Positions 26,442 to 52,322 of a stretch of 64,000 nucleotides of DNA are shown here, piece by piece; position 1 is the first letter of the stretch; the number at the start of each line of letters is the position of its first letter. A program made the position numbers and the translations under genes. Origin of the DNA: Cyanophora paradoxa CCMP329 (lineage: Eukaryota > Plantae > Glaucophyta); assembly GCA_004431415.1 (NCBI GenBank), contig QPMI01000627.1, positions 62,001 to 126,000 on the forward strand. Reading direction: 5' to 3'. The notes beneath the pieces were generated by a model that was given only the letters and a program-made list of their open reading frames with translations, was not told the DNA's origin and ran no database searches.

Positions 26442-27633
26442 CCACGAAACCGGCTAGTCCGTGAGGAGGATAGGAGGAGCCTTCGAATTCGGAGCAAAAG
26501 ATAGACAAACGTCACCAGATAGATACTCTCTTCGCTCATAGAAGCGTCCAGCTTATTTTAGAAATTGGTTTCGTCTCTTGAGACCGATCTGGCAGGCCAG
26601 TTCGTCACTAGTATGCCTTTGTATGTGCGCGCGCTTTCGATCTTATATGCTAGTAACTAGTATGTAGGGCCCGCTGTCGCCAGCGTTCTGGCCAGCGGAC
26701 TCCCCAGTGTTTATTCCTTTAGTAGTTCACTGAGATTTATGCGTATTTCTACATTCTTTGCGTCTCTGCCAGCGGACTCTGATGTTTCTTCCTTCATGAT
26801 CCGATCATCAGCAGTTCGCTGAGATTTCGTGTCCAATTCGGACCTCCGACAGCAAGTCCTGAGTCCGATGTTCTTACCCATGAGAACATGTGCACGAGTT
26901 TAAACTCGCCAACTCGCCGAGTCGAGCTCTGAGATTTAGTTTACAATATGCGCATGACGCAGTGCGCATTCCCCGCGGGTCCCCGGGGGGGGGGGGGGGG
27001 GGGGGGGGGCCGCCCGTGCCCAGCTGCAGCATGCATATGGCAGGACCCTAGGCCTGCATTGCCCCCTCGCGAGCTCCGGGATCCCGCCGGGGGCCGCGCT
27101 CTAGCTGCCGCATGCACACTGTGTGACATGCAATGTGACACGGTGCAGGGCCTGCATCATGGCCCAGTGCGGGCCAGTGGGCTACATGCGATGATGCCGT
27201 GATCATGATGATCATGAGTACCCGGGCCCGGCGGGGCGTCGGGCGCGAGGCCGGGGGAGAGAGGCGCGGGGAAGGGAGCCCGGGTGAGGGGCGGGGCTAC
27301 ACCTACGCCGGATGATCACGTCGACCAGTTCGCGATTGCAAGCACGCGAGGTGAAGAATAAAATACAATTCCATTGGAGGAGATACAGTACTACAGTACA
27401 AGAATTTGAAACAGATCTGAATATCACATGTAATCACTCCACATGCTCTACACTGAGATCAGAACGACTTTTCTGATCAATGAATTTGATGGAGGAGAGG
27501 CGAAGAAATTATACGGGATCGCTTGTGGGATCGATGCAACGCATTGAAACTAGGGCAGGGCGAGGCGACGGGGCAAGGCGAGGAAGGGGGAGCTCGAGGG
27601 GAGAGGCGCGGGGAATTCGAGGGGGGGGGCCGC

Positions 27634-29739
27634 TTATGCGGCGCCGGTGTTGAAGACGGCCTGGGCGAGGGCGTAGTAGAGGGGGATGCCGATGGTGATG
27701 TTGAAGGGGAAGGTGATGGCGAGCGAGGTGGTGACGTAGTACGAGGGGTTGGCGTCGGGGATGGCGATGCGGACGGCCGCCGGCGCCGCGATGTACGAGG
27801 CCGAGGCGGCGAGGGCGGCGAGGACGGTGGAGCCGCCGACCGAGAGGCCGAACTGGTGGCCGATCAAGACGCCGAGCGAGCCGTTGATGATGGGCGCCAG
27901 GATGGCGAAGACGGCGAGCGAGGGGCCGACCGAGAGGAAGTCGCGGAAGCGGTTGCCGGCGATGAGGCCGAGCTCGAGCAGGAACATGAGGAGGATGCCC
28001 TGGAACGGCTGCACGAAGAAGGGCGAGACCTTCTTGAAGCCCTCCTCGCCGCAGACCCAGCCGATGATGAGGCCGCCGATGAGCAGGATGATCGACTTGC
28101 CGTAGAGCACGTCAGCGATGGCCTCCTTGAGGCGCTCCGACGACGATGTCTTCTTCTCCTCCGACGCGGCCGCCGCGCCGGTCGCCTGGTCCCCAATCAT
28201 CACCTGAGGGGGGCCGAGTCAGCCGCGGCCAAGGCGTGGAGGGGGGCAGGGCGGGGGCGGGGCGGGCCTGCTCAGACTTGGCGTCCATGGAGACGAGGGG
28301 GCCCGGGGAGAGCGACTCGACGGGGCGCGGGACGTACTCCTTCTCGGACACGTCCTCATCCTCCGGCTCGCCCTTGAGGTACGCGTACGTCAGCAGCGCG
28401 ATGATGATGCCTGCCGCCCCGCGTCAGACGAGCGCCGAACGCGCGGGGGATGCGGCGGGGGCGGACCGGGGATCTCGAGGAGGGTGAGGAGGGCGGGCAT
28501 GTACCCCTCGACGGAGACCTTGTTCAGCTCCATGAACGTGAGCGACGCGATGAACGTCACGGCCGACGTCGACGCGTAGTGGGCCGCCATCGCTGCGCGC
28601 GCGCCTCAGCGGGGGTACGGCGCGGGGCGGGGTAAGGGCAGGGGCGGGGCGGACCGCAGGCGTCCTCGAGGGAGAGCTTGAGCCAGTTCTTGAGGACGAA
28701 GAAGGTCCACGCCGGCGCGATGCAGCCGAGCAGCAGCGTGCCGAACGCCGGGCCCGCCAGCGTCGACAGGTCCGCCACTGCGCGCGCGCGGCCCGTCAGC
28801 GCCGGCGTCGAGGGGCGGGGGCGGGGCGGGGGGCACCGTTGGCGACGGCGACGCCACCCTTGAGGCCGAGGGCGAGGAGGAGGTAGATGGAGATGGACGA
28901 CTGGTAGCCGGCGGGGAAGGAGAGGTCCGAGCGAACGAAGGCGGCAATCGCGCCGAGGAAGAACGCCTGCCCCCGGCCCCGCGTCGGCCCCGGCCAGGCC
29001 CGGCCCGGCGCCCAGCGGCCGGCGGCGCTGCGCACCAGCACGGCGGGCGACTTGAGGTTGGCGGCCGCGAGGGCGGCCTGCGACGCCGGCGCGTCCGCGG
29101 CGAGGGTCAGCGACTGCGCGACGGTCTTCTCCGCCGCCGCCGAGAGGCTCGAGAGCGTGTTCACGTCCAGGAACTTGGACGCCGCGCCCGTCATCGACGG
29201 GATCTCGAGGCCCGCCGGCGCTGCCCAGGGAGGCAATCATTAGCCCCGTCCCGGCCCCGCGCGCGCGCGCGACGCCGCTCGGCCGGCGCACCATTGCCGC
29301 TCGCCTGGATGGTGCTGAGGAAGCGCTGGGCCGGGGCCGAGAGCACCGACTTCCTGCGCGCGCCCCGCGTCAGCCTCCCGCCCGGCCCGCATACGTCGCC
29401 CCGAGGCGGCGCGGGGAGGGCGCGGCGGGCCCTAGGCATGTCGACGCTCCGTCGACGTCTAGAGGAGCGGCCAAGGGTCGCGTACGCGCGCGCGACGGCC
29501 CCGATCCGGCGCGCGACGGCCGCGACGCTCCAGCCCGGGTTCGCCTAGGCCCTCCCTGGGCGCGGCGGAGCGGGCACGCACTTGCTGACGGCCTCGCCGG
29601 CGAGGAAAGAGCGGCCAAGGACGACCTTGCGGCTGGTGAGGCCGGTCGCGCGCGGCTGGACGGCGACGCGCGCGGCCCGGAGGACCGGCGCGGCCTGGGT
29701 CGACGCGGCGTGGGACGGGGTCGGAACGACGAACGCCAT
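27634..29739 (-). CDS. sbtA: SbtA-family sodium-dependent bicarbonate transporter with plastid transit peptide, copy A (8 exons)
   Basis: Family motifs SPAVLAFFLG..VRSDL, SIYLLLALGLKGG, AAHYASTSAVTF, LLEIPGII, KSIILLIGG, FLLELGLIAG, ASASYIAAPAAVRIAIPDANPSYYVTTSLAITFPFNITIGIPLY. N-terminal MAFVVPT...SFLAG...TIQA leader. Confidence 0.92.
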
Positions 29740-29935
29740 CTCTACTCTAGCTTCTCTGCTGACTGCCTAGAACGTCTGCCCGAACAGGTCTTTAGCCGCG
29801 CCTTTTACGCGGAATTATACGGCGACGGTCCAAGTATTGTCCCCTTTTACGACCCCGCGTTGCAACCTAGTCCATCGCCCTACCCCCCGAGTGGCCCCTT
29901 CGCTGGCCCCTCGCGGTCGTAGAGTCGCTACCGTT
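29740..29935 (-). promoter_or_regulatory. Upstream region of SbtA copy A, homologous to the Trx-B/SbtA-B intergenic promoter
   Basis: Reverse-complement similarity to ~41790-42010, including TTTTACG at 29803 and 29845 and GGAATTATA. Confidence 0.55.
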
Positions 29936-30349
29936 CATGCGATCAGCGGCCGCGCGCGGCTTGCTGCGCGCGACGTCAGCGAGCCGGCGCGAGCTGCGGC
30001 CGACTCGCTTCCAACCGCGCGCCACGCGCCCGCGCTGCGCGGCGGCCATGGCCATATGCGCCTGCAGCTGCCTTCGCGCAGGGACGCCGACGTCGACGTC
30101 GCAGCGCGATCGGCAGCATACGTATACCGCAGTACTAGTATGCGTGCGCATGCGCAGCTCGAGCTAGCTGTGCTAAAAGCTATTGCGCCGGCGTGCGCGT
30201 AAGCTACAGCTATAGTTGCCCTGACGCGCGGCTCTTGCGTTAGCTATAGTGCTCGGTCCGGCGCCGTCGGCACACCGCAGCCTTTGGGGTTGGAAATTTA
30301 CACGGTCCATTCGATGCCCTATCGCTAGCGGCCCGCGGCGATAGCCCCG

Positions 30350-33138
30350 CTACATCTCGAGCCAGGCGCTCTCTTCCTCCGCCGCCGCCGCGCCCTCTAC
30401 TTCGCCTCCACCGCAGAAGTCCGCCTCGTGGGCCGCCGCCGCGAAAGACGCCGCCGCGGCGCCCTCGGCCAGCGTCGCGCCCCCCTCCCCCTCCTCCCCG
30501 CCCTCCTCGTCCTCCCCCTTCTTGGCGCCGCCGGAGCGCAGCCCCTCGAGCCGCTGCGGAACAGCTAAGCTTTAGGGGGCGCCCGGAAGAGCTGCTCGGC
30601 GAATCGAATTCGGATCAGGGACTCACGATGTCGGCGAACTCGCGGAGGGCCTCCGCCGTGCGCATGTCGTCGAAGCGCTCCGCGTCGTACTGGCCCCGCG
30701 CCGCCATCCGATGGTCAGACAGAGCCCAGCAGCTTCGAGGCTCAGGAGACGAGAGAGAGGCGGCCTAGGCCTAGGGCGCTCTGGAGGGTCTGACCTCGGG
30801 CCCGAAGGGGCGTGCCGCCACTCAAACTAAGCAAGGAGACGCGCTCTAACTCTTACTCTAAACCAGCGAAGGCTCGAGGGGGGCAGGCTCTAAACGAGCT
30901 GGGCGCGCGCGCGCGGGTCCCACCTTGTTGTCGATCACGTCGGGCGTCTTCTTCGTGAGGAACACCACGTAGGGCACCCTGCCCCCGTTCACGGCGCCGG
31001 TCAGAGGCCTCTGCCCGAGGGGGGTACGGGACGCGCACCCGTCGATGGGGTACCCCGCCAGCTCGCCGATCTGCTGCTCCACGGAGTTGATCCTGCCCGC
31101 CCCCCGTCCGTCAGGGCCGGCGAACGGGTCGGGGGCAAGGGCCAGGCCGTTATACGAAGCGCCGCTTAGAGGGGCGGTGACGAATGTCATGTTCCGACCC
31201 CCGGGCCCGGGGGCGGGGGCGGGGGGTAGGGGGGTAGGGGGTTCCGGGGGGCGCGCCTGGCGACGGGGATCTTGCCGGCGACCTCGCGGGCGTAGTCCTC
31301 GTACTCCGGCGCGAACTTGTTGCAGTGGCCTGCGCCCCGGCGGCGGAGGCCCGCCCAGGCTCAAGGCTGGGCGGAGGCCGGCTACAGGGCCGGCTGCGGT
31401 CTGGTGAGCGGGCCGCACCGCACTCGGTCCAGTACGCCTCCACAAACATCGCGTCTGCGGGGGGGCCGGGGCGCCCGGGCGGTCAGGCCGGGCCGCGCGG
31501 AGGGGGGCGGGGCGGGGCGGGGCCTCGGGAGCCAGGGGGCCCGTGGGGGTAGGGGTGCAGAAGGCGGGGGGCGGGCCCCGGCGGGCGAAGGGGGGCGCCC
31601 CCGCGGGCTCTGGTGGGCGGGCGGGCGGGTAGGGTGCGGCTGGAAGCGAAGGGAGAGGATCGGCGTGGGTACGAAACGAGGTAAGGGCGAGATAGGGAAG
31701 GCGAATCGGAAGTGTCGGAGGGGCGAAGCGAAGGGGGGCGGATGGCGGGAGAGCTCGGCGGTCGTCGAGGGGAACGATAGCTTGGGTGGGAGACAATTGG
31801 GTGGAGTAGGAGGGGCGGGGGAGGCGGGCGGGTCCCGGCTCGAGCCCCCTCTCTAGACAGGCCCGGGCCCCCTCGTGGGGTGGGGCGGGGCCTCGGGGGG
31901 TAGGGGCTCGGTGGGGCTAGGGAGTGAGAAGGCGGGGGGCGGGCCCCGGCGGGCGAAGAGGCGGGCGGCCCGGGTAGGGTGGCTTGGTTAGGAAATGAGA
32001 TAAAGGCGATATAGGGAAGGCGGAAGAGAAGGGTCGCAGGGGCGAAGGAGGCGGGACCCTAGCGCATGGCGGGAAAGCCCGGCGGGTGACGGGCGCACCG
32101 CCGGGGAGGTCGCCCTCCTCCTGCGCCGCGATGAGCGCCTCGAGGTCCGCCGCGCTCCCGAGCTCGATCACCTGCGCGCCGGGGGCTCAGCTAGGGGGGA
32201 GGCGGGAGGTGGAGCTCAGCTGAGGCCATCGAGGGAGGGCGGGGTGGGGGTGGGAAGGGGAGGGGGGGGGAAGGGCCGCGCCCGGCCTCCGTTGAGAGCT
32301 CAGACGAGGCCTTGCAGGGGCGTGGGGGTGGAGGCGGCTGCGAGCGCCCGTCCCTCCTTGTCGCCGTCTAGTACTAATGGAAGGCTCTCTGCCAGGCTCC
32401 GTTCGAGGTAATGAAAGCGCACGACCGCCATTACTACAACACCTAGAGGGCAAAGCTTCTACGCGTGTCCCCCGTATAAACTGGCGGCTGGCGCTTCTGG
32501 AAGTCTATGCTAGGCACCCTTCGAGGCCAATGGCTACAATGCCCGTGCACGTTTCTAGGGATCCCGGATTCGTTTTAGGCTTCCCTCGAGGCCTCTAGTT
32601 CCCCGAATAAACGAGAGCGCGCGCCCGCCCCGCCTCGACGGCGGCCTTCGCCTCCTCGATGTCGATCGTGGCCCCCCGCGCCGCCGCCTCGCTCGCCGTC
32701 TTCTCCTTCTGCGGGGGCGCGTCGGTTGGCGGTGTTGGAGCGCCTCTCCCTCTTATTCTCCAGGGCCGCTCTTCCCTGACAGACGCAGATCTCGAAACGC
32801 GTCTCTCCCATCTTTGGACGCGCGGAAAGCGTCTATGAGGGATCCCACTCGACGCGGCTAAGCTGGCGCTAGTTCTCCCCGCTACTATCCCAGAGGGGCG
32901 GGCGGGCGGGCGGGCGGGCGGGGCGCACGGCAGGGGCGCGGCGGTCGATGCCGCAGTTCTCGGCGATGTACTCCTTCAGCCCGTCGACCGTCCGGTCCCC
33001 CAGGTACTCTGTACCCGGCCCCGCCGCGCGCGCCTCAGCGGGACGGCCCGAGGGGCGGGGCGCGGCGGGGCTGGGCGGGGCGGGGCGGGGCGGCGGAGGC
33101 TCGGCGTGGAGAGCTAGCTAGCATTTGGGGGCGGCAGA

Positions 33139-33173
<35 letters not shown>

Positions 33174-33975
33174 ACCCTCAGTATCGAACTTGTAGTCCAC
33201 CTCCCCCGGCGTTTTCTGGCGCCCTCGGTCGGCCCGAGGGGCGGACAGCGCGGGGGGTACCGGCGCACCTTCTCCAGGAAGACGAACGAGGGGTACCCGT
33301 GGATGTCCTGGCCCCCGATGGTCGTGATGCCGGCCTCGGCAGCGTCTGCGGCCGCCCGCCCAAACGCCCGTCAGCGCTCCGCCGGCGGCCTACCCGCCCT
33401 CCCCAGAGAGGTCGCACCGATGCGAGCGATGACCATCTGCGGCGGGGCGGGGCGGGGCGGGGCGGGGCGACGCGTGCCGAGGCTAGGCGGGCGGAGGCAC
33501 GCGCAGGGGCGCTAGCTTCTATCGGCGAGCCCCTATGAACGCCTAGCTACGGCGCGGGCACGGCCGCAGTGCGCCCGAGCACCTTGCCCTTGACGCCGTC
33601 GGCGGCGGCGAGGCTCTCATAGACGGACTTGGCCTTCATGCAGTGCCTGCACCAGGAAGCGTAGCCCTCCACCATCAGGCAGTCTGCGGTCCGCCGCTAA
33701 GCCGCGGACCGAAGCTTCCGAAGTTCGCGGCGCCAACGGGCGCCGGGCTCAAGCCCGGGCTCTAGACGAGGGCGCCGGGCGCACCGCCGGGGAGCTCCCC
33801 ATCCTCGACCGCGACGAGGAGGTCCTCCAGCTCCTGCAGGCGAGTCAGCAGCGGCGGCTGGCGCGAGCCGAAGTTGCGGCGCGCCTTCGTTGCTATTCAG
33901 CTCTATGACGCGGCCCTCCGCGACGGCGCGCTTCGCCGCCGGCACATCGAAGTCTGTCAGCGGCTCTGACGACAT
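30350..33975 (-). CDS. Two-domain thioredoxin/PDI-like protein, copy A (apparent +1 nt at end of exon 1; possible pseudogene or assembly error)
   Basis: Exons colinear with copy B: WCRHC and ECGHC sites, IHGYPSFVF, acidic tail ending SAWLEM-TAG. Exon 1 ends AAC GAA G|gc versus AAC GAG|gc in copy B. Confidence 0.75.
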
Positions 33976-36110
33976 AGCTGGTAGTTGTGGGACGGGCGCG
34001 GCGGCGGGCGCGGCGGTTAGCTCGAATTCGAAGTGCGCATCCCCGGCGGTGCCACGACTGCTAGCTCGGCGCACCGGTAGCGAGCGCGAGGGGACAGCGA
34101 AGGGGCCACCAGGCCGCCACCTGCATGGGGGGATAAGGCGACGGGCCAGCTTGCCCCGAGAAGCTGAGCCGAGGGCGTCAGGCGCCCTCGCGCTGTTGGT
34201 CTCGCAAGGCGTGGTGCCGCTTTTGCTGAACAGCTGTGTACCCCGAATCCGCAGCATTACAGAGCCTTTTCATGTTTGAAGAGCACGCAGGGCAAGAACT
34301 GGCTCCTTGAATCACAACAGCTGCAGGGCAAGAATTGGAACCATCTGGCTAAAGATGGAACCTCGGTGCGTCGGCGCTAGGCTTTTCACCCGTGCAGGTG
34401 ACGCCAAGTCGGCGAGCCTTTAGCGCGAACGACGCTCGAAGACACCCATTTGCATCGTCTCGCGCCCCCCGCGTGTCGCCGGCCTGATCTCAATCGCATA
34501 GCGCTGCTCCAGCGCGGAGGATCCCGCTCGTGGCGGAGAACGCTCGTGAACGCGTCGTCCTTGCCTCTTCAAGCCCCCTTGATCTGCATTCGTTGCCCGG
34601 ACACCGCCGGCGAGTGTTCTTGCGGTTGACAGGCACGCGCGAAAAGGAGACGGCGGGGGCCTAGGCGAAGCAAGGTGCTTTCCGTTTCCTCTCCTTGGAT
34701 CCAATCCCTCATTCCGCTGGCGGGTCAGGGAACGGTGACTCGTCCACACGAGCAGAGCATCACCACCCAGTTCGCCAAGCGTCTTCTCCCGCAGGGCCGG
34801 TGCTCGCTCTTGTTTCAGTTATTTTCGCTTCGATGTTGTTGTGACGCCGGCCGCGTGCGCAGCGGACCGGGTGGCGTTCTCGGACGAGTGGCTGGCTGCT
34901 GGACGCCCTCGGAGTTCATGCGCTTGCGGCCTCTGGGGCGCAGGTGCGGCAGGCGCGGTCGTTTATCGGCATTCTTCTCTTCTTTCGGTTGACGCTCCGA
35001 GCGCAGCGAGCGCTGCGCCTTCGGCATCGCGGTCGAGGGATGCCGGACCGGCCCGGACGCGGCGCGAGCCAGCCTGTTGCTCACTCTCCTCGCTGTGGTG
35101 CACAGCGGTCCGTTTGCCGGTCACCACTCGCTAATCTTCGTTTGATACGCCCGCTGACCGTGATGCGCGCAGCGCGGCGAGCGCAGCAAGGTGCCGGTAA
35201 TCTCATGGGAGCTGCGACCTGCAGGACAGAGATGCAGTGCTTCCCTGGAGGCCGCTGCATCCCGGGTTTTCTTTTGTATTCGTAGCTGCAGCCCAAAAGC
35301 TAGATAGAGCTGGGTTTTTCTCAAAATTGTCTGTTCCCGGAGATTTTTTGCTGCATGCTGCAGCCTGCAGGCCTCGCGCCTCTTTAGCCTACGTATACGA
35401 ATCGACGCAGTTCTCCACGCGCTAGTGCGAGAGAGATCACTCGCTACACGCTCTGCGGCACGAGTCTAGTGCACACTGAATAGGCGCGCCGGCCGGGCGC
35501 CGTGCGCATACACCGTGGCACGCGCGCGCAGCAGTACTGGTGCGTAACAGTGCGCATGCGCATGCGCATGCTGGCCGGCCGCCAGATCCCCGGACGCCGA
35601 ATTTTAATCGGGAAAAAGTATGGACCGTCGGACAAGCCGAATTTTGGACAGCTGCAGGCTAACATGCAGAGCGCGTGCCGGGCGCCGAATTTTGGACAAG
35701 CTCACAGACATGCTAGCTTTGTTCAGGCGCCGCGGCGACGCCAACAGCTTTAAAATACAGCTTCCATTTCCCATATGTTACAAGATTCACAAAGGGGGTG
35801 AACGAGAGTTAGTCCTCGTTTTTGCGCGACGCGGGCACTGTGCGGAATGGTGCAGGGAGGGCGAGGCCAATGGAGAAAAAGTTCATGCCAATCTGTGCAC
35901 CGGCTCGCCCGGAGAAGACCAAACCCGTGGCCTTCTGGAGAGCAATCCGCTTGTCGCAGAAGGCGTACACGCAGGTGCAGGCAAGCGCGCCCGTCGCGTT
36001 CACCGAACGCCTATCCAGCACAAGGCGTGTTAGATAGAAACGGAAGCCATCCAGCGCACCGCAAGTGTTATTGGGTGAGCGGAGTCTTCAGCGCACCACA
36101 AAGACGGGTC

Positions 36111-37373
36111 CTACGAGGACCGCGGAGTCCAAAATTGACGCAGGCGAAGATAAGCGGTGAAAAGAACTCTTTCGGGCTGCCGGTTTTTCACAACGTCAGG
36201 CATAAGAATATGCATTTGTGAAAGAACGAAAACGCTCGCCAGGGTCGCCCTTGCCATGGATGCATTCAGCGCTTCCTGCCCGAGGGCCGTCAGGGACGCG
36301 AAAGACGATTCACTTTGTGCTGGCGAGCGCGGACCTCGGCTTTCTTCTCCCGCTCCTGAACGTGCAACGCGTCAGCATCAGCGCCGGAAAGTCGATGCGC
36401 CTGGAAAGCGCGGACCTTGGCCTCCTTCTCCCGCTCCTAAACGTCGGAACGGGCATGATCAGCGTGGGCGCCACGCGCACGCGTGTGGAGAGGCCAATGC
36501 GATGCGCCGGCGAGCGCGGACCTCGGCTTTCTTTTCATTCTCCTGAACGTGCAACGCGTCAGCATCAGCGCCGGAAAGTTGATGCGCCTGGAAAGCGCGG
36601 ACCTTGGCCTCCTTCTCCCGCTCCTAAACGTCGGAACGGGCATGATCAGCGTGGGCGCCACGCGCACGCGTGTGGAGAGGCCAATGCGATGCGCCGGCGA
36701 GCGCGGACCTCGGCTTTCTTTTCATTCTCCTGAACGTGCAACGCGTCAGCATCAGCGCCGGAAAGTTGATGCGCCTGGAAAGCGCGGACCTTGGCCTCCT
36801 TCTCCCGCTCCTTAACGTCGGAACGGGCATGATTAGCGTGGGCGCCACGCGCACGCGTGTGGAGAGGCCAATGCGATGCGCCGGCGAGCGCGGACCTCGG
36901 CTTTCTTCTCCCGCTCCTGAACGTGCAACGCGTCAGCATCAGCGCCGGGAAAGTCGATGCGCCCGGAAAGCGCGGACCTTGACCTCCTTCTCCCGCCCCT
37001 GATCGTGGAAATCAGTGCTTAATCGACATTAAACCTGAAAGCACGAGAAGGCGAACCTTCAAGGCCTCTACTTCGGCCTAGCGCGCAGGGGGCATCAGCC
37101 GCAGTTGAAAGGCCGCGCTTGGCCGCAGACTTCACCTTAAGCTTTTCAATCAACGCCTGCTGATCGCCCGCGTCCACATTAGTGAAATCAAGCCAGGTAA
37201 GCAAGATGTGGTTACCTGATCAGAGCTCGCGTCCTGAGAGTTGCGCGCTTGTGCCTGCAAACGCATTGCTGACGATTGCGCTTGCGCCTGCCAGCGCAGA
37301 GGAAAGAACATACACGCTTATTTTCCTCAAGATCTGTGCTCGGTGGGATCGCCGACGAGTTGGGCGGCGCCAT
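36111..37373 (-). CDS. Orphan charged-helix/coiled-coil protein encoded by an array of 21-nt microexons (5' and 3' ends uncertain)
   Basis: Phase-0 exons, each bounded by AG and GT, most with branch-like CTGAC/CTGAT/CTAAT upstream: MAPPNSSAIPPSTDLEENKR|AQARNSQDASSDQ|(Q)ALIEKLK|AEVEALK|GREKEVK|EREKKAE|EREKEAK|ENEKKAE|EREKEAK|ENEKKAE|EREKEAK|EREKKAE|EALNASMARATL... Confidence 0.7.
36320..36998. repeat. 187-bp tandem repeat (~3.6 copies); each unit is two microexons plus two introns
   Basis: Period 187 (exons at 36416/36603/36790 and 36335/36522/36709/36896); 21+60+21+85 = 187. Confidence 0.95.
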
Positions 37374-38392
37374 CGGTTTTCACGGCGAGCGCCCTGGGCC
37401 CTTTTCTCGGCTATGAGGATGAAGGGCAGCGGACACCCTCGCTGGGGTGTCTCCGAGCTCACAAAAATGTACCCGCCAATACTTGGCCAGGTTGGCCTCA
37501 AGCCTCAGATAGCCTGTTTAGACAGTGGCCACTTGCCAGAGGCCAATGGCCAGGCCAGGCCAGCTTGGCGAGCTTGGCGGTTGCCATGGGTCGAACGCTA
37601 GCAGCGTGCACCCGCACCTTTAGAGCCGGGTGCCTCTCGCCCATTTGCGCATCGAGAAATTCTAGGCTTCTGTCACACCTGCTGGATCGGCCCGTTGCGA
37701 AAGGCTGGATGCTTGCTCCGCTGAATCGTCGTGAGCTCCCGGCTCCCTGCAAGCCTGTCTGCTTCCGGGCTCAGGTACTACGCAGCTGAGAAGTTGCTCA
37801 TCCGGGCTCAGGTACTGCGCAGCACCCCACTTTACATCAAAGGAATCTTTGAGCTAGGAGTCAATTGCAACTTCCATGCTCCTAGCTCGACCCGACGCGA
37901 TTTCGCGCAGCGGCTTCCCGGGGATTCCTTGCAGCTCCGCTAGTGCCTGGCGGCAGCGCGCTCGCGGAGCGCGCTACAACCGTTGAACCGCTCTCCGCCA
38001 GAAGCTACATGTACAGCGGAGCTCCGCGCTGTTGTGGTGCGTGCTCACCAGGGCGGCGGTTTCCTCCGGAGCTTAATACACAGTTTTAAATGTTTGTTCA
38101 ATGCGCGTTCTCACGTAGTTTTGCTTCCTCGCGTTTCAGGGACAGATCTGGCGCCTGGGAGGCGAGCTCGAGGGACGCCTTCGCGGGGATGGAGGACGGC
38201 CTCCTCGCCCAGGTGTTTACATTCAATATGTCATTTGCTCAAATATCGTCAAGCGTGTGCCATGAGCGCTAGCTCGAGGGGCGCTCGGGGGGAGCTTGGG
38301 GCGGGCGGGGGGTGGTGGGACCAGGCGGGCTCGACCTAACTTGTAATGAAGGGCTTCATAAAAAAGCTGTACATAGGCGGCGCAAGCCCGGT

Positions 38393-38616
38393 GCCCCGGC
38401 GGACCCGACCTTACTCCGATTTAATTGCAAAAAGATCCTACAAATGCATCGGCGCCGGCGCGCCCCTACATCTCGAGCCAGGCGCTCTCCTCCTCCGCCG
38501 CGGGCGCCCCCGGCGGACTCGACCTTACTCCGATCTAATTGCGAAAAGATCCTACAAATGCATCGGCGCCGGCGCGCCCCTACATCTCGAGCCAGGCGCT
38601 CTCCTCCTCCGCCGCG
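38393..38616. repeat. ~120-bp tandem duplication of the Trx-B stop codon and proximal 3' UTR
   Basis: gaccttactccgat..aattgc..aaagatcctacaaatgcatcggcgccggcgcgcccctacatctcgagccaggcgctctcctcctccgccgcgg occurs twice. Confidence 0.85.
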
Positions 38617-41600
38617 GCGCCCTCTTCTTCACCGCCGCGGCAGAAGTCCGCCTCGTGGCCCGCCGCCGCGAAGGACGCCTCCGCGACGCCCTCGGCCAGC
38701 GCCGCGCCCCCCTCCTCCTCCTTCTCGCCCTCGTCCTCCTCCTTGGCGCCGCCCGAGCGCAGACCCTCGAGCCGCTGCGGAACAGAACAGCTTAGGAAGG
38801 CCGCGGCCGGAAGAGCTGCTCGGCGAATTCGAATTCGAATCGGTGACTCACGATGTCGGCGAAGTCGCGGAGGGCGTCCGCCGTGCGCATGTCGTCGAAG
38901 CGCTCCGCGTCGTACTGGCCCCGCGCCGCCATCCGATGATCAGATAGAGCTCAGGAGCTCAGGAGACGCGATAGAAGCAGTCTCAGGAGCTCAGGAGACG
39001 CGATAGAAGCAGCCTCGGGCTTTTCTGAGCTAAGAGGCGCGTCCCGGTCCGGCGAAGGATAGAGGGGGGTACGCCCTAACAGAGCGCGGCGCGCGCGGGT
39101 CCCACCTTGTTGTCGATCACGTCAGGCGTCTTCTTCGTGAGGAACACAACGTAGGGCACCCTAGTTCAGGGCACCGGTCAGGGGCCTCGCCCCGGGGGAG
39201 GGGGGGGTACGGGAAGCGCACCCGTCGATGGGGTACCCCGCCAGCTCGCCGATCTGGTGCTCCACGGAGTTGATCCTGCCCGCCCCCCGTCCGTCGGGGC
39301 CGGGGCACGGATCGGGGGCGAGGGCCCGGTCGGTTGGAGAAGCCCCCCTCTCCCTTCTTTCTACAGCTATGCCTTGCTCCGACCCCCGGGCCCCGGGCGG
39401 GGCGGGAGACTCTGAGTGCAAGGGCGCGCCTGGCGACGGGGATCTTGCCGGCGACCTCGCGGGCGTAGTCCTCGTACTCCGGCGCGAACTTGTTGCAGTG
39501 GCCTGCGCACCGCCCGCCCGCTCAGAGGCTGGCTACAGGGCGCGCGGCGGTCCGGGGCGCGGGCCGCACCGCACTCAGTCCAGTACGCCTCCACGAACAT
39601 CGCGTCTGCGGGGCGGGCCCCGGGGCGCAGGCGCCGATCAGGGGGGGCGGAACCCCGGGGAGAAGGGGGTCGGTGGGGCCAAGAGGAGGTCGGGCCCGAG
39701 GCGAAGAGAGATGCGGGGGTAGGGACAGTGGCTTGGGAAGGAGGCGATCGGGCGGGGCAAGGGCGCGAGGGGCGGGGGAGGAGGGCGGGCCCCGGCGGGC
39801 GAAGCGAAGGGGGGCGGTTGGCAGGGGAACGAGTGAAAGGAGCGGGAGGCGGGGGAGGCGGGGCGGGGCGGGGCGGGGCTAGCGATGGGGCTCGAGCCCA
39901 GCTTGCTAGCCCGAGCCGGGCTCGAGCCGGCACCCCTCGAGCCGCGCGCCCCGGCTCGAGCCCCGTCTCTAGCTGGCCCCGCCCGGGCGGGCGCACCGCC
40001 GGGGAGCCTGCCCTCCTCCTGCGCCGCGATGAGCGCTTCCAGATCCGCCGCGCTCCCCAGCTCGATCACCTGAGCGCTGAGAGCTCAGCCGGGGCCTTGG
40101 AAGGGGGCTGGAGGGGAGGTGGGGGGGAGGCGGGTGGGTGGGAGGGAGGGGAGGGCCGCGCCCGGCCTCCGCCTCCGTTGAGAGCTCAACCGTGGCTTTT
40201 GGAAGAGCGTGGGAAGGAGGCGGGTGGGAGCGCCCGTCCGGCCTTGTCGTCGTCGCCGTCTAGTACTAATAGAAGTCTAAGGTTCTCTCTAGCGTGTCCC
40301 CCGAATAAACGAGAGCGCGCGCCCGCCCCGCCTCGACGGCGGCCTTCGCCTCCTCGATGTCGATCGTGGCCCCCCGCGCCGCCGCCTCGCTCGCCGTCTT
40401 CTCCTTCTGCGGGGGCGCGTCGGTTGGCGGTGTTGGAGCGCCTCTCCCTCTTATTCTCCAGGGCCGCTCTTCCCTGACAGACGCAGATCTCGAAACGCGT
40501 CTCTCCCATCTTTGGACGCGCGGAAAGCGTCTATGAGGGATCCCACTCGACGCGGCTAAGCTGGCGCTAGTTCTCCCCGCTACTATCCCAGAGGGGCGGG
40601 CGGGCGGGCGGGCGGGCGGGGCGCACGGCAGGGGCGCGGCGGTCGATGCCGCAGTTCTCGGCGATGTACTCCTTCAGCCCGTCGACCGTCCGGTCCCCCA
40701 GGTACTCTGTACCCCGCCCCGCCGCGCGCGTCTCAGTGGGGCGGCCTGAGGGGCGGGGCGCGGCGGGGCAGGGCGGCGGAGGCGGCGTGGAGAGCTAGAT
40801 AGCTAGCAATCGGGGGTGGCAGAGGCAGCGGCGACCGGCGGCGGCGGCGCACCCTCGGTGTCGAACTTGTAGTCGACCTCCCCCGGGGTTTTCTGGCGTC
40901 CTCCTTCGGCCCGAGGTGGGCGGGCAGCGCGGGGGGTACCGGCGCACCTTCTCCAGGAAGACGAACGAGGGGTACCCGTGGATGTCCTGGCCCCCGATGG
41001 TCGCGATGCCGGCCTCTGCGGCGTCTGCGGCCGCCCGCCCGGGCGAGCGCCCGTCAGCGCTCCGCCGCCCGCCTACCCGCCCGCCCCAGAGAGGTCGCAC
41101 CGATGCGAGCGATGACCATCTGCGGTGGGGCGGGGCGGGGCGGGGCGGGGCGGGGCGGGGCGGGGCGGGGCGGGGCGGGACGGCGCGTCAGCGCGGGCGA
41201 GGCTTGGCGGGCGAAGACACCGCGCGCAGGGGCGCTAGCTTTTACCGGCGAGCCCCTATGAATCGCGGCCAGCTAGCTACGGCGCGGGCGGGGCCGCAGT
41301 GCGCCCGAGCACCTTGCCCTTGACGCCGTCGGCGGCTGCCAGGCCCTCGTACACGGGCTTTGCCTTCATGCAGTGCCTGCACCAGGAAGCGTAGCCCTCG
41401 ACCATCAGGCAGTCTGCGGCCCCGCCGCTAAGCCGCGGAGCCGAAGCTTTCCGAAGTTCGCGGCGCCAACGGACGCCGGGTTCAAGCCGGCGCTCTAGCT
41501 GAGGGCGCCGGGCGCACCGCCGGGGAGCTCTCCGTCCTCAACCGCGACGAGTAGGTCCTCCAGCTCCTGCAGGCGAGTCAGCAGCGGCGGCTGGCGCGAG

Positions 41601-41707
41601 CCGAAGTTGCGGCGCGCCTCGTTACTCTTCAGCTCGATGACGCGGCCCTCCTCGACGGCGCGCTTCGCCGCCGGCACATCGAAGTCTGTCAGCGGCTCCG
41701 ACGACAT
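38580..41707 (-). CDS. Two-domain thioredoxin/PDI-like protein, copy B (intact); no signal peptide or KDEL
   Basis: Spliced: MSSEPLTDF..VIELKSNEELEDLL..LPGDCLMVEGYASWCRHCMKAKPVYE..MVIARIDAAE..IHGYPSFVFLEK..EYLGDRTVDGLKEYI..VIELGSAADLEAL..LPGDAMFVEAYWTECGHCNKFAPEYE..IPVARINSVE..IDGVPYVVF..RTADALRDF..acidic tail SAWLEM*. Confidence 0.85.
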
Positions 41708-42010
41708 AGCGGCTGCGGGCGCGGCGGGCGCGGCGGTTAGCTCGAATTCGAAGTGCTTATACCGTGGCTGCTAGCTCGGCGCACCGTGGCACCGGCAGCG
41801 AGCACGAGGGCGAGCAAGGGTCACTCGGGGGGTAGAGGCGATGGGCCAGCTTGCAACACCGGGGTCGTAAAAGGCAACAATACTTGGAACGTCGCCGTAT
41901 AATTCCGCGTAAAACGCCACGGGTAATATAATTCCACGCTCGTAAAAAGCCGCGGCTAAGGAGCTGTTCAGTCAGACGTTTAGGCAGTCAGCAGAGAAGC
42001 TAGAGTAGAG
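41708..42010. promoter_or_regulatory. Putative bidirectional promoter between thioredoxin-B and SbtA-B
   Basis: 303 bp between divergent ATGs; AT-richer than flanks; CGTAAAA at 41866, 41908 and 41941; TATAATTCC at 41898 and 41927. Confidence 0.6.
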
Positions 42011-44136
42011 ATGGCGTTCGTCGTTCCGACCCCGTCCCACGCCGCGTCGACCCAGGCCGCGCCGGTCCTCCGGGCCGCGCGCGTCGCCGTCCAGCCGCGC
42101 GCGACCGGCCTCACCAGCCGCAAGGTCGTCCTAGGCCGCTCTTTCCTCGCCGGCGAGGCCGTCAGCAAGTGCGTGCCCGCTCCGCCGCGCCCGGGGACCA
42201 GCCTAGGCGAACCCGGGCTGGAGCGTCGCGGCCGTCGCGCGCCGGATCGGGGCCGTCGCGCGCGCGTACGCGACCCTTGGCCGCTTCTCTAGACGTCGAC
42301 GGAGCGTCGACGCGCGCCTACGGCCCGCCGCGCCCTCCCGGCCCCGCGCGCCGCTTCGGGGCCCGTACGTATACGCGGGCGGGAGGCTGACGCGGGTCGC
42401 GCGCAGGAAGTCGGTGCTCTCGGCCCCGGCCCAGCGCTTCCTCAGCACCATCCAGGCGAGCGGCAATGGTGCGCCGGCCGAGCGGCGTCGCGCGCGCGCG
42501 CGCGGGGCCGGGACGGGGCTAATGATTGCCTCCCTGGGCAGCGCCGGCGGGCCTCGAGATCCCGTCGATGACGGGCGCGGCGTCCAAGTTCCTGGACGTG
42601 AACACGCTCTCGAGCCTCTCGGCGGCGGCGGAGAAGACCGTCGCGCAGTCGCTGACCCTCGCCGCGGACGCGCCGGCGTCGCAGGCCGCCCTCGCGGCCG
42701 CCAACCTCAAGTCGCCTGCCGTCCTGGTGCGCAGCGCCGCCGGCCGCCCGGCGCCGCGCCGCGCCTTGCCGGGGCCGACGCGGGGCCGGGGGCAGGCGTT
42801 CTTCCTCGGCGCGATTGCGGCCTTCGTCCGCTCGGACCTCTCCTTCCCCGCCGGCTACCAGTCGTCCATCTCCATCTACCTCCTCCTCGCCCTCGGCCTC
42901 AAGGGTGGCGTCGCCGTCGCCAACGGTGCCCCCCGCCCCGCCCCTGCCCCTCGACGCCGGCGCTGACGGGCCGCGCGCGCGCAGTGGCGGACCTGTCGAC
43001 GCTGGCGGGCCCGGCGTTCGGCACGCTGCTGCTCGGCTGCATCGCCCCGGCGTGGACCTTCTTCGTCCTCAAGAACTGGCTCAAGCTCTCCCTCGAGGAC
43101 GCCTGCGGTCCGCCCCGCCCCTGCCCTTACCCCGCCCCGCGCCGTACCCCCGCTGAGGCGCGCGCGCAGCGATGGCGGCCCACTACGCGTCGACGTCGGC
43201 CGTGACGTTCATCGCGTCGCTCACGTTCATGGAGCTGAACAAGGTCTCCGTCGAGGGGTACATGCCCGCCCTCCTCACCCTCCTCGAGATCCCCGGTCCG
43301 CCCCCGCCGCATCCCCCGCGCGTTCGGCGCTCGTCTGACGCGGGGCGGCAGGCATCATCATCGCGCTGCTGACGTACGCGTACCTCAAGGGCGAGCCGGA
43401 GGATGAGGACGTGTCCGAGAAGGAGTACGTCCCGCGCCCCGTCGAGTCGCTCTCCCCGGGCCCCCTCGTCTCCATGGACGCCAAGTCTGAGCAGGCCCGC
43501 CCCGCCCCCCCCCCCCCCCCCCCCCCCCGGCCCGCCTTGGCCGCGGCTGACTCGGCCCCCCCTCAGGTGATGATTGGGGACCAGGCGACCGGAGCGGCGG
43601 CCGCGTCGGAGGAGAAGAAGACGTCGTCGTCGGAGCGCCTCAAGGAGGCCATCGCTGACGTGCTCTACGGCAAGTCGATCATCCTGCTCATCGGCGGCCT
43701 CATCATCGGCTGGGTCTGCGGCGAGGAGGGCTTCAAGAAGGTCTCGCCCTTCTTCGTGCAGCCCTTCCAGGGCATCCTCCTCATGTTCCTGCTCGAGCTC
43801 GGCCTCATCGCCGGCAACCGCTTCCGCGACTTCCTCTCGGTCGGCCCCTCGCTCGCCGTCTTCGCCATCCTGGCGCCCATCATCAACGGCTCGCTCGGCG
43901 TCTTGATCGGCCACCAGTTCGGCCTCTCGGTCGGCGGCTCCACCGTCCTCGCCGCCCTCGCCGCCTCGGCCTCGTACATCGCGGCGCCGGCGGCCGTCCG
44001 CATCGCCATCCCCGACGCCAACCCCTCGTACTACGTCACCACCTCGCTCGCCATCACCTTCCCCTTCAACATCACCATCGGCATCCCCCTCTACTACGCC
44101 CTCGCCCAGGCCGTCTTCAACAGCGGCGCCGCATAA
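42011..44136 (+). CDS. sbtA: SbtA-family sodium-dependent bicarbonate transporter with plastid transit peptide, copy B (8 exons)
   Basis: Inverted, near-identical copy of 27634-29739 with the same seven introns (last has a GC donor at 43495). C-terminus VFNSGAA versus VFNTGAA in copy A. Confidence 0.92.
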
Positions 44137-44429
44137 GCGGCCCCCCTCGAAATCCCCGCGTCTCTGCCATTCTCCCTCCCCCCTCGCCCTGTCCTCGCCC
44201 CTAGTGCCAATGCGTTTCATCGATCCGACACGCGACATCGATCCCGTATAATCTCTTTGCCCTCGTCCAGCCAGGCGACAGCTGCAGAGGGTTTTTGTGT
44301 AGAGTAATGTAGCGTACTGTCCTAGCCCGCCTCTGCAGCCGTAGCCGGGCTTTTGTATGAGTAGTGGAACCGTAATTTATGAGAACTTTTTCAGTCTGAG
44401 CCGGGGATGAGTTCGGGGCCTCAGGGCCG

Positions 44430-44870
44430 GGAACGCGGAATCGACGCGTTGGAATGGGAGAGGGAGGGACTAGGTGCGTTGCAATTGGTAGGACTGGAAT
44501 GGCGCAGAGAAGGCGCCGGCGTCGACAGTGGCGCGACGTCAGCGCGGAACGCGGAATCGACGCGTTGGAATGGGAGAGGGAGGGACTAGGTGCGTTGCAA
44601 TTGGTAGGACTGGAATGGCGCAGAGAAGGCGCCGGCGTCGACAGTGGCGCGGCGTCAGCGCGGAACGCGGAATCGACGCGTTGGAATGGGAGAGGGAGGG
44701 ACTAGGTGCGTTGCAATTGGTAGGACTGGAATGGCGCAGAGAAGGCGCCGGCGTCGACAGTGGCGCGGCGTCAGCGCGGAACGCGGAATCGACGCGTTGG
44801 AATGGGAGAGGGAGGGACTGAGTGCGTTGGTGGGACTTGAATGGACCAGAGCAGGCGCCGGCGTTAGCGC
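44430..44870. repeat. 116-bp tandem repeat (~3.7 copies) between the convergent SbtA-B and TPGS2 3' ends
   Basis: Unit ggaacgcggaatcgacgcgttggaatgggagagggagggactaggtgcgttgcaattggtaggactggaatggcgcagagaaggcgccggcgtcgacagtggcgcggcgtcagcgc. Confidence 0.95.
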
Positions 44871-47184: not shown

Positions 47185-49870
47185 GTTCCGATCATTCGTC
47201 TGTGCTGCGCGTCCGCGTCGGCGTGGACAGTCAGCAGGTCGTGTTGGCACAGTGCGGCGGCCAGGCTGGCGCTCAGAACTGAGCTCCCCAATGGGGGTAC
47301 GCACTCTCCGACGGGCAGTTACCTTGCTGCTCGTCAATGCGATCACGGTAGCGCTTCAGGCGCTCGTCGCGTTCGACAAGGAGACGAGGCGAGGCTTTTT
47401 TCCTGATTCAAAACGTGCGCCGACGCCCTTAGAGCGAAAGGGTCAACTACGCATTAGTCGACCTGGCGCGCAGTCGGGCGGCGCCGCCTCACACCCGAAG
47501 CGATCTCCCGCCGTCTTTGCTGTCGTGTGGTCGTCGTCGGTCGACTAGTCCGACGGCACTGCGGCAGCTTTGGTCTCCGTCGAATCTCCGTAAACCAGCG
47601 ATGTGCAGCGGCGCGGGGCTTCGGCCGCTCGTTGCGATTCCCGTTGTCGGCAAGGCCGCTCGATCCTCTACACCCGACGGCACCGCCAAGCCAAACATCC
47701 TTATCACAAATGTGAAATCCATTTCGACCATTCGGCCGGCGGAGCGGGGTTGCACCCCGACGCACCAACCGCATCCGTCCCTAGCCCCAGACACTGTTGA
47801 GATCCACGCCATCCACGACTCCTGCCGCCAGGTCCGTCTCGGCGCACGTGTTCGCAAGTGTTCGCAAGCTCGAAAATTTGATCTCCCGCAACCTTTGCAG
47901 ACGGACCTGCTATCCTCCCCAGGCGCCCTTTGGTTCGCCCTGGCATCGTCCGAGAACGACCGGAGATCGCCCTCGCCGCTCGCGATGCCAACGGCAACCA
48001 AAGAATCCAGAGATCTGGGGTGGGCCTTATCCTTTGACCGCCCGGACCCGTCTCCGGAGCGGGAGCGGCCTTCGGCTCCACTGCCTTTCATCGACATCGC
48101 CGACCGATCGGTCGTCTCCCCGCCGCCCCCTTTGCACCCGCTGCTTCGGCCCGTTCCTCGCCGGCCGCCCGTTACGCCGCTTGCGACCCGCGCGCTGCGA
48201 CCCATCGGTGTCGAATCTGCTCGAGTCATCACACGAGTCATTACGCAACCCACGTGCGGCTTCCATGCCCGCCCCGTTCGTGCCGCGCCGTCTAACCGCG
48301 ACACCGCCGCTCGCAGGATCCGGCGGGTCCCCGGCCCCAGTATCATGTGCGAGATTCGATATTCGCTTGGACCGACCCCGCTACCGTCCCCGCTGACGTT
48401 ATCACCCGCGCAGCGCCAAGCGGGGGCGCCCCGTCGTCAAGCTCGCCATCCCGAAGGCTTTCCTCGGTCCCCGGCCCCTCTGCTTCTCCCCCACCATCGG
48501 TTCGACCCGCCCTCGCCCTCGCCCCCGCCGCGCTCTGCGCTCCGCTTTCGCCGACACAGCGCGCGTTCGCAGAGCGGAGGATCGATCAACTCCTCATCGA
48601 CGACATGGGCGCCCCTCTGACCGTGTAGCCCCCCGATGCCTTCCTTCCGTCCGACGTGCCGGGCGAGTCCCCAACTTTTTTTCGTTGTCCGACGTGCCGG
48701 GCGAGTCCCCGACTTTTTTCGTCGTGCCGAACACTTTTTTCCCCTCCTGTACTGGGCCCGCGAGTCGTGTACAGATCTAGACCCTGCTCGCCGGCCTAAG
48801 ATGCTTTTTTCCCGACCCTTCTTTCAATGTACCCCGAGGTCCAGCGCCCGCTGGCTTTGCCCGCTCTTTCTCCTCTCAGACCTCGCCTTCTGTTGTGACC
48901 CCATTGCCTGTACTTTGCTTCCCGGCCGCGAGCTGGCTGCAGTGTGAGCCATGCTCCTGGCCGACATTTGATGCAGTTACATGCTCTACAGCCAGCTGAT
49001 CAGATAACATTCTTTGTAACCTCATTCTAGCTCTCCTCTTTGGCAGTTAGCGCGGCTCTTGCCTCCGTGCGGGCGCCCGCTGGTATTGAGTCTCTTCTAG
49101 TTCTCCATGTTCAAGGACTTTGGTTTCCCTCGATCCCCCTGCCCCTTCGGCTTTCGCCCCTAGTGCCTAGTCCCGGCATTCATGAACGGTCCGATCCGAC
49201 CCGTGTTAGTCACGTGATCTCGATGATCGTTTATGGTTGGTAGTTTCAGTTCGCAGTAGTGAAAGCAGTTTGATTTAGCTTATTTGCTTCTCGCATTCAA
49301 TGATTTGCCCATCTTGTTACATATACTGTACTACACTGTGAACAGTGAACACTAGTTTAAGATCTGTGTGTGGAATCGATTGGTCTTCGATTCGATAGGC
49401 TGAAACATCACGACGGAGTCAGACGGACAGCTCTGCAGCTGACAGTTTTACTGATTCGCGGATGCAAGATCCGTGAAACGACCGTAGGACTGACAACGCG
49501 CCGCAGTGATGATCATGAGCCGTTAAGCGATATGCATGCGCATATGGTAATTAGCAAGCACTGAACCAGAGCTCGAGGCCTGCAGCCGCTGAGCTGAGCT
49601 CATGCATCACGGCAATACTAGCAGACCGCGCCCGGCCCTGTGCAAGATCGGCAAGTGCGGGCCGCGCGCGGAGGTGCAAGGGGGGGTACTGGTACACATT
49701 GCAGGGTACTTAGGGTGTGTGTGTGTGGGAGGGGGGGGGGGGGGGGGGGGGAGGGCAGAGAGGCAAGGCGGGCGGCCGGGCGAGGCGGGCGGGGTCGCGA
49801 GGCGGGCAGGTGGGGTGGCGTCGCGGGCGGCGGCATCAGGCAGGCAGGCAGGCGAAGGCGGCGGCGGGCG

Positions 49871-50345
49871 GGGAAGCGGGCGGAGGGGCAGGTGGCGCCG
49901 GGCCCTGCGCATAGCCTGCACATACGCAGAGCTGAGGCGTCAGCTCGCCCCGGACAGCGGCCGTGCGGGGGCGGGGCCCAGCGGGGGCGGCCGGGCCAGG
50001 TGCGCGGCAGCAGCGGCGGGCGAACCTGGAGTCGACGACGCTGAAGCAGCCGGCGAGGCGGCGGGCGAGGAAGCGGGCGGAGGGGCAAGTGGCGCCGGGC
50101 CCTGCGCATAGCCTGCACATACGCAGAGCTGAGGCGTCAGCTCGCCCCGGACAGCGGCCGTGCGGGGCGGGGCCCAGCGGGGCGGCCGGGCCAGGTGCGC
50201 GGCAGCAGCGGCGGAGCGAACCTGGAGTCGACGACGCTGAGGCAGCCGGCAGGGCGGCGGCGGGGAAGCGGGCGGAGGGGCAGGTGGCGCCGGGCCCTGC
50301 GCATAGCCTGCGCAGGGCCGAGGCGTCAGCTCGCCCCGGACAGCC
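49871..50345. repeat. ~195-bp tandem repeat (~2.5 copies), possibly an exon+intron unit of a minus-strand gene
   Basis: ggaagcgggcggaggggcaggtggcgccgggccctgcgcatagcctgc..gaggcgtcagctcgccccggacagc recurs at ~49871, ~50069 and ~50264. Confidence 0.85.
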
Positions 50346-52322
50346 GCGGCGCAGGGGCGGGGCCTAGCCCGACGCGACGTACTAGGAGCAGCTGCGAATG
50401 CTGCGACGCCGCGGCCACCACACTCTGCTACGGAACGCCGGCCGCGGTTCAAGCCACGCATACGTGGGGCCGAGGCGTGCAAGTGGCGACCCGCCCCGTG
50501 CTTGAACCGCGCTTGAAGAGCTTGACAACATCGAGCTGGAGTCTGCTCGATCATGAATCGGAGTCCATCAGAAACCGAGAGCGTTGGCAAAACGCCGCGT
50601 CCGCGGGCGCGCACACAGCCGGCGTCGCGGCGTCTCGGGCGCCTCCTTCCTGCACTCTCGCGGCGCTCTCCGCCACCAGGAACGGCTGTGCCCGCATTCG
50701 CCACCAGGAGCGCATCCGCGGCTGTTCCCGCACGGTGTAGGTGTCGACGCCGAGGCCGCAGCCGGAAGCGCACCGGAACGCGACGTTGCGGGCGCGCCGC
50801 TCCGGCGCGCGCTCCGCATGCGGATGCTCGGCCCCGCGACCTCGACCTCTGAGCCGGGCTCTAGCATGTGTACCCAGCAATCGGCTCCCGACTCGAAGGA
50901 GCGCTTTTTTTCGGCGCCCGGTACAACAGGTACTTGAGGCGGCCTAGCGCGCCACGCGCCGCTTCTCGAGCCCAGGCATGTATGACAGAGTTTGTAGAGC
51001 GCATTGAGAGCATTCAGGAGCACGTGGTCCGGCGCATATAGCAATAGCAGGTGAGGAGCGGATTCGCGTACCCCGACCTGGAGAGAAAGTAGGTAGCGGG
51101 CTCCTGCCCGCTGGGCGCCTCTCCGGCTGCCGCGAATCGCCTCGGCGGTGCCTTTAGCCCTCCTCTAGCTGGTTAGCCGCGCGTCCGTTAGGAATCCGCT
51201 CCGTGGGTCGGTTCGGCGAGCTACTCCAGCGGACACCAGCGGCGGCTTCAGCAGCTGCTCTCTCGTTCAGCCCAAGCACTTCTCTGCGGCAGCGATCGGC
51301 CGCCCGCGGCTATGGGGCCGGCGACCTGCGCTGCGCCCGCGCAGATGATCGTCGGTCGTGTGAGTGCACGCCCGCGTCGCGGCCGTGGGCGTCGCGGCCG
51401 CACAGATGCTTGGATTCCTGGCGAGGCGACGTGCTTCTGAGCACTCGGGCGGCCCGGGGCCTCCCAACCCCCGCCGCAGCGGACTCCGCGCGCGCGCGCG
51501 CCAGCTGGAGGAGGTATCTCTCGGCCGAGGAGCACAGGTCGCCGGCTGCGGCCGGCGATGCTGTGCGCCCGCCGGTTTTCACCCGGGCTCTCACGGGCTC
51601 CGGTTTCCGGCCCTCCCTGGGGTTAGTCGGCCTTGCTCTCTTAGTGCGCTTCTTCCCTGCCAAATTGAGGGCTATAGTTCAGGCTCAGCCGCTTCGACCT
51701 CATCCTCGCTTATACATCGGTCCTCTCTGTAGGCGCCCTTGTCCTGAGGGGGGTTATAGTAGCTCTGCTCTGCTTCGGCTCTCTAGGCAGGTGTAGGCAG
51801 TGCTTCTAGGCAGGTATAGGCCCCTTTCTCCAGTACAATAGCTCCACCCGGTCCGATGTCCGAAAGGCTTGTTCCCGTAGGCTCATCTCTCGACTTGACA
51901 CAGATGGACACTGCAGTCATATCCCTAGCCATTTGTCTTGGTGTGTGCGAATTCATTTGTATAGCAGGTGAGGAGCGGCTTCGACATGTTTGCGCAGCCC
52001 CGCCCCTGCATTTTTTTTCGCCGCTCGCAGCGGCTACGATGCGATCACAGCTATACGAGAGCGCATGCAAAGAATCTCATCTTACAAAAATTACTAACAC
52101 AGAAAGTACGCCGCACCAATTCACCAGGGGAGCAAGGGAGGGGGTACCCCCCCTTGCAATGATGCATTCGTCAGGAATCTATCTGTCTGTCTACCTTGAA
52201 ACAACGGGCGGCTCCGCGGCCGAGCTCCAGCAGCGACCCCGAGCCCGCCCGCACACAGTTGCTGGCGAGATGCCGGCCGCCGGCCGCCGGCCAACCGCGC
52301 GCGCGCCGCGGCCGACCGCCGG

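Follow-up and report, generated by a model that had tools for sequence, protein, structure and literature searches.

Genes in which one exon corresponds to one structural repeat, and which have grown by duplication of an exon together with its intron, include those of collagen, with its 54-bp exons, titin PEVK, and nebulin. The micro-exon genes (MEGs) of schistosomes form another class of unusual exon architecture, and the exon sizes in MEGs vary from about 6 to 36 nt. MEGs contain runs of very small symmetrical exons, the removal of which never breaks the reading frame, so that skipping can vary the protein (PMC4015677). Up to 75% of the MEG coding sequence lies in microexons, and a signal peptide is present in most of the products (PMC4015677). 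Same-phase alternatively spliced exons have also been reported at the 5′ end of troponin T (PMC2447309). Furthermore, the published genome of Cyanophora paradoxa has a GC content of 67.6% and 9.2 introns per gene, which average 86 bp in length (PMC6704402), and the literature search returned no paper on Cyanophora microexons.

In the window analyzed here, i.e., the whole stretch of 64,000 nt, a candidate minus-strand gene combines the features of two known kinds of gene: micro-exon genes and exon-equals-repeat genes grown by exon and intron duplication. By in silico reading, it contains ten consecutive 21-nt exons of phase 0, i.e., several symmetrical exons of ≤36 nt, and it resembles the schistosome MEGs in its consecutive tiny symmetrical exons. 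By contrast with MEGs, its microexons are all exactly 21 nt, account for about 45-51% of the coding sequence, and are separated by introns of 58-85 nt; the candidate product has no sequence homology to MEG families, and a signal peptide, looked for in the exon 1 translation, is not visible. Similarly to collagen, titin PEVK, and nebulin, the locus has one exon per structural period, a single phase, and tandem growth of exon plus intron. The period is smaller than in those genes, however, being a single 7-residue heptad, and the copies are still 96% identical, so that the expansion is very recent.

The ten 21-nt minus-strand segments proposed in the initial annotation were all recovered, each with AG before it, GT after it, and no frame-0 stop. 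In minus-strand order, they encode ALIEKLK (U1, 37136-37156), AEVEALK (U2, 37057-37077), GREKEVK (U3, 36978-36998), EREKKAE (U4, 36896-36916), EREKEAK (U5, 36790-36810), ENEKKAE (U6, 36709-36729), EREKEAK (U7, 36603-36623), ENEKKAE (U8, 36522-36542), EREKEAK (U9, 36416-36436), and EREKKAE (U10, 36335-36355). The gaps between them are 58, 58, 61, 85, 60, 85, 60, 85, and 60 nt, with 59 nt on either flank. A tandem array with a 187-bp period occupies positions 36322-37000 (3.6 copies, 96% matches; Tandem Repeats Finder), and this satellite is indeed, as had been claimed, two exon-plus-intron units: an A-type exon with an 85-nt intron and a B-type exon with a 60-nt intron (187 = 21 + 85 + 21 + 60). 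U3, the first unit of the array, and U5 are of B type, U4 is of A type, and U6 is a variant of A type. U1 and U2 lie outside the repeat and were not alignable with its units by MAFFT; the earlier remark that these older, non-repeated exons keep the same 21-nt size holds.

Pairwise comparison of the introns indicated that the A and B types are related (z 5.3), that the intron after U2 is faintly B-like (z 3.3), and that the similarity of the intron after U1 is marginal (about 1.9). Substitutions between the copies of the A intron preserve CTRAY (CTAAT/CTGAT) and AG. The array grew by repeated tandem duplication of one exon-plus-intron unit of ~81 nt, which diverged into the A type (85-nt intron) and the B type (60-nt intron) before the AB pair of 187 bp was amplified about 3.6 times. 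This duplication history, from an 81-nt unit through a 187-bp double unit to an array, is still readable at the locus.

Outward extension of the model gave a possible whole gene at 37373-36111 on the minus strand, in which an ATG exon and a 39-nt exon precede the ten microexons and a terminal exon follows them. No ordinary ORF covers this candidate gene, in agreement with its reported absence from the ORF track. The proposed exon 1 (37314-37373) consists of 60 nt or 20 codons, with the ATG at 37371-37373, an in-frame stop three codons upstream, and a GTATGT donor at its end. Intron 1 (37255-37313; 59 nt, GTATGT..TTGCAG) lacks a CTRAY motif, which is one weak spot of the model. Exon 2 (37216-37254) has 39 nt, i.e., 13 codons, and is of phase 0. 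Intron 2 (37157-37215; 59 nt, GTAACC..CTAAT..CAGCAG) ends in the tandem NAGNAG acceptor (CAGCAG, 37157-37162) that the initial annotation had noted before the first microexon; the upstream AG of this acceptor, if used, adds one Gln. U1 and U2 are each followed by an intron of 58 nt, intron 3 (37078-37135, GTGAAG..CTGAT..CTAG) and intron 4 (36999-37056, GTTCGC..CTGAT..TCAG), respectively.

Within the array, U3 is followed by intron 5 (36917-36977), which is of B type with 61 nt (GTCCGC..CTGAT/CTGAC..TTCAG). The A-type introns of 85 nt are intron 6 (36811-36895, GTCCGC..CTAAT..TTAAG), intron 8 (36624-36708, CTGAT..TTTAG), and intron 10 (36437-36521); the AAG acceptor found in one case is the other weak spot of the model. 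The B-type introns of 60 nt are introns 7 (36730-36789), 9 (36543-36602), and 11 (36356-36415). Being multiples of three and stop-free, these three would remain in frame if retained, and each retention would add 20 residues without truncation. Intron 12 (36276-36334; 59 nt, GTCCGC..CTGAC..GGCAG) shares its first 13 nt with the array, and the remainder is unique. The proposed terminal exon (36111-36275) provides 54 codons at 36114-36275 and a TAG at 36111-36113, with a third-position GC of 0.52. A possible further intron of 57 nt lies within it (36177-36233, GTTTTC..CTGAC..CGGCAG); because this optional intron is in frame and stop-free, the ORF is open with either reading, and its retention corresponds to 19 additional residues without truncation.

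The credibility of these introns can be judged against four reference introns in the neighboring gene for SbtA, a bicarbonate transporter, which were positioned by homology to the Cyanoptyche protein P0001. The validated SbtA introns are 56, 59, 62, and 69 nt long and have the donors GTCCGC (twice), GTGCGC, and GTGCCC; CTGAC or CTGAG is located 13-18 nt from the acceptor in three of the four, the 69-nt intron being devoid of such a motif. The two introns with GTCCGC, which carries C at +3, are at 43101-43162 and 43296-43351. Since homology-placed introns use GTCCGC, this donor appears to be normal in this GC-rich genome, although it looks unusual for a eukaryote; nine of the 12 candidate introns have it. 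The candidate introns resemble the SbtA introns in length, in the use of GTCCGC, and in where the branch motif lies: their lengths are 57-61 nt, or 85 nt in the A type, versus 56-69 nt in SbtA and a published mean of 86 bp. All 12, and the optional one, have the GT-AG ends of U2-type spliceosomal introns. The branch-like motifs claimed previously were found in 11 of the 12 introns of this fuller model, as CTRAY with the branch A 13-22 nt from the acceptor. Furthermore, eight candidate introns keep to 57-61 nt, and three of these (introns 1 and 2 and the optional intron) are mutually unrelated in sequence and have no detectable similarity to any other intron.

A chain of AG-N21-GT segments within a tandem repeat is by itself no evidence of splicing, because a 50-bp satellite elsewhere in the window (15973-17109) yields 12 such segments in a row on its plus strand (16074-17144). 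Used as a negative control, this satellite, which is without branch motifs at an intron-like distance, fell from a chain of 12 to 2 when a correctly spaced branch motif was made a requirement. It comprises about 16-22 copies in a lower-GC, GC-skewed stretch. The exon-chain test was defined by 21-nt phase-0 exons whose acceptors have a branch motif at a distance of 10-26 nt, and the locus was also scored in a collapsed form with three 187-bp periods removed. The chain of 21-nt exons reaches 10 at the locus and 4 in collapsed form, compared with a longest chain of 3, seen in 7 of 1600 simulated 64-kb strands. With phase-0 exons of any length from 15 to 60 nt, the chain is 12 at the locus and 6 when collapsed; the longest simulated chain is 5, occurring once in 1000 simulated 64-kb strands. 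In the 36-37 kb bin, the 22 qualified intron models all belong to the minus strand, the plus strand having 0.

These results bear on the explanation that the pattern stems from chance, from a plus-strand gene, or from a structured or known RNA such as a snoRNA host array, which taken as a whole is very improbable. GC-rich DNA does yield long spurious ORFs, and a 171-codon plus-strand ORF crosses the array. This ORF, however, has no Pfam match, no qualified plus-strand intron model occurs there, and, because the 187-bp period is not divisible by three, its reading frame shifts from one repeat unit to the next. Chance is excluded by the simulated strands, and the plus-strand reading is excluded likewise. 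Regarding a structured RNA, the Rfam matches are at chance level only and the repeat unit folds no better than its shuffles (z +0.92); moreover, introns of 58-85 nt are too short for a snoRNA.

The reading that the minus-strand locus is a real spliced protein-coding gene, probably a small lineage-specific one extending from about 37373 to 36111, is held here at about even confidence on the features of the sequence. The spliced reading runs from the ATG, just past an in-frame stop, to the terminal stop and is open exon by exon, as translated for each exon separately. The six distinct internal exon lengths (39 nt, 21 nt four times, and 42 nt) are all multiples of three, and exon length is fixed at 21 nt while intron length drifts from 57 to 85 nt. 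The difference between the A and B exons is a swap, E5K plus K7E, which leaves their composition identical. These observations argue against a rather unlikely alternative, in which the locus is transcribed and spliced about as modeled and the RNA is non-coding, or the gene is very young or decaying and has no maintained protein. Several observations favor that alternative. The third-position GC of the flanking exons is at background (0.65 in exon 1, 0.62 in exon 2, and 0.52 in the terminal exon, versus 0.87-1.0 in neighboring coding exons), and the absence of the very high values of the neighbors leaves the coding status of these exons uncertain; no high-GC3 segment was found across the 4.5-kb spacer at 34036-38577. 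The purine-rich microexons are stop-free in every frame, so that little can be concluded from their open frame. Exons show a higher density of differences between repeat copies (6 of 42 positions) than introns do (5 of 146), but four of the six exon differences form a single cluster (CGGGAG to AATGAA), and the contrast in density is therefore not decisive. Likewise, no homologues were found in the databases, including the other glaucophyte transcriptomes under the eukprot source, and the terminal exon is unlike natural proteins to a language model, its recognition in the ESM Atlas being low and giving no lead.

The searches behind this statement covered several parts of the model. The terminal exon gave 0 matches among 1.84 billion cluster representatives, which is weak evidence, since the query would be interrupted if the 57-nt intron is real and since this organism seems to be missing from the library. 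An unspliced genomic ORF of 97 codons that includes two heptads, with scoring limited to its heptad part, returned no candidate protein of 53-170 residues by the criterion of three shared 5-residue words. Pfam gave no match on eight local ORFs and exons. An SbtA exon served as a positive control; its best match was a transcript-derived protein of the glaucophyte Cyanoptyche with 71% identity, and no self match appeared, though the length filter could have hidden one. Exact look-up of ten ORFs of the window found none in the protein collection. The missing self match and the absent ORFs suggest that sequences of this organism itself are probably missing from the databases; the blank searches then say little about the alga's own transcripts and mainly mean that there is no homologue in other organisms.

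It is unlikely that the locus is instead an untranscribed relic, i.e., an exon-plus-intron fragment amplified in an intergenic spacer, the splice-like signals of which are kept only through recent common descent. Such an origin agrees with the 96% identity of the repeat copies, by which most signals come from a shared ancestor copy and have not been maintained separately, and the units that are recent copies are not independent evidence; it also agrees with the position of the locus, which lies between two duplicated genes in a spacer of lower GC. By contrast, recent copying does not account for U1, U2, introns 1 and 2, the optional 57-nt intron, or the unique portion of intron 12. These introns are all intron-like in length and ends, all but intron 1 have CTRAY at the right distance, and the non-recent parts together complete a start-to-stop reading. 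Furthermore, the collapsed chain still exceeds all simulations.

If the spliced protein-coding gene is real, its product is predicted to have about 157 residues, or about 138 with the optional 57-nt intron removed. The N-terminal 33 residues are polar, and exon 1 encodes a Pro/Ser-rich 20-mer with no hydrophobic core. Hydrophobic residues are present at both positions 3 and 6 of the heptad only in U1 (I3, L6) and U2 (V3, L6); U3 has V6 only, and U4-U10 have E3 and A6. In U3-U10, 45 of 56 residues (80%) are E, R, or K with a nearly balanced charge, Glu is at position 3, Ala or Val is at position 6, and opposite charges are spaced i to i+3 and i+4. A canonical coiled coil has hydrophobic residues at a and d through no fewer than about four heptads, a pattern that the candidate does not show. 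The initial annotation had suggested an E/R/K-rich helix or coiled coil. Its first part agrees with the E/R/K content, for which a single alpha-helix is the better fit; its second part fits less well, since a/d-like hydrophobic positions are confined to heptads one and two, with a weak instance in heptad three. Judged by sequence, the repeated heptads fit an ER/K single alpha-helix (SAH) better than a coiled coil. ER/K SAH domains occur in, e.g., myosin X, myosin VI, and caldesmon. In a comparison by sequence only, the heptads U3-U10 resemble these domains in their 80% E/R/K content, nearly balanced charge, and lack of a hydrophobic seam, and they differ in that the candidate stretch is only about 56-70 residues. 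SAH domains are not known to be encoded one heptad per exon. The predicted product would begin with a short polar segment, continue through two amphipathic heptads and eight E/R/K heptads, the latter acting as a stiff SAH-like spacer, and end in a short tail.

With its own donor, branch motif, and acceptor, each short intron could be removed separately by the spliceosome, leaving seven codons between successive introns, and the purine-rich GAR exons may aid their own recognition. Skipping any microexon would keep the frame; short introns, however, suggest that each intron is recognized on its own, which would make skipping uncommon. The earlier proposal that unequal crossover tunes the length in steps of 7 residues has to be revised, because exchange between 187-bp units would mainly shift it by 14 residues. 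We regard it as improbable that, in an expressed gene, a stiff charged helix owes its length to how many 21-nt cassettes are present, with exon skipping, in-frame retention of the 60-nt introns, and copy-number change of the 187-bp unit producing a ladder of spacer lengths. Were such a ladder real, the locus would represent a natural molecular ruler with one heptad per exon, and intron-by-intron splicing would handle at least 10 consecutive 21-nt exons. If expressed, the gene would be among the cleanest cases in which a single exon matches a protein structural period, here one helical heptad, and would provide a stringent natural test of how the spliceosome recognizes many consecutive 21-nt exons between 60-nt introns. 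If unexpressed, the locus would still be a useful example of an exon-plus-intron fragment becoming a satellite. In addition, it shows why annotation based on ORFs and HMMs overlooks such genes in intron-dense algae.

The window has a GC content of 0.60-0.75 in most 2-kb bins, and the spliced genes there have very short introns; the DNA is taken to be that of a glaucophyte, most likely C. paradoxa. The microexon locus is situated in a unique lower-GC spacer of 4.5 kb (34036-38577), in which terminal inverted repeats were searched for and none found, so that the spacer gives no sign of a transposon. This spacer is bounded by two direct copies of a multi-exon gene (30346-34036 and 38577-41756; 77-92% identical), which are in turn enclosed by inverted copies of SbtA (27490-29819 and 41927-44269; 95.5% identical); the SbtA copies enclosing the two direct gene copies constitute a nested segmental duplication. 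Two young tandem arrays are also present in the window, one just downstream of the plus-strand SbtA copy (44430-44829; 116 bp × 3.4, 98% matches) and the other at 49860-50368 (197 bp × 2.6, 92% matches). By the same criteria as those applied to the microexon locus, a chain of phase-0 microexons is absent from both. Finally, a 114-bp tandem duplication (38394-38622, 96% matches) includes the final codons and the stop of the upstream duplicated gene together with the beginning of its 3′ UTR; because it spans the stop, the acidic C-terminal end of this gene recurs just past the stop.
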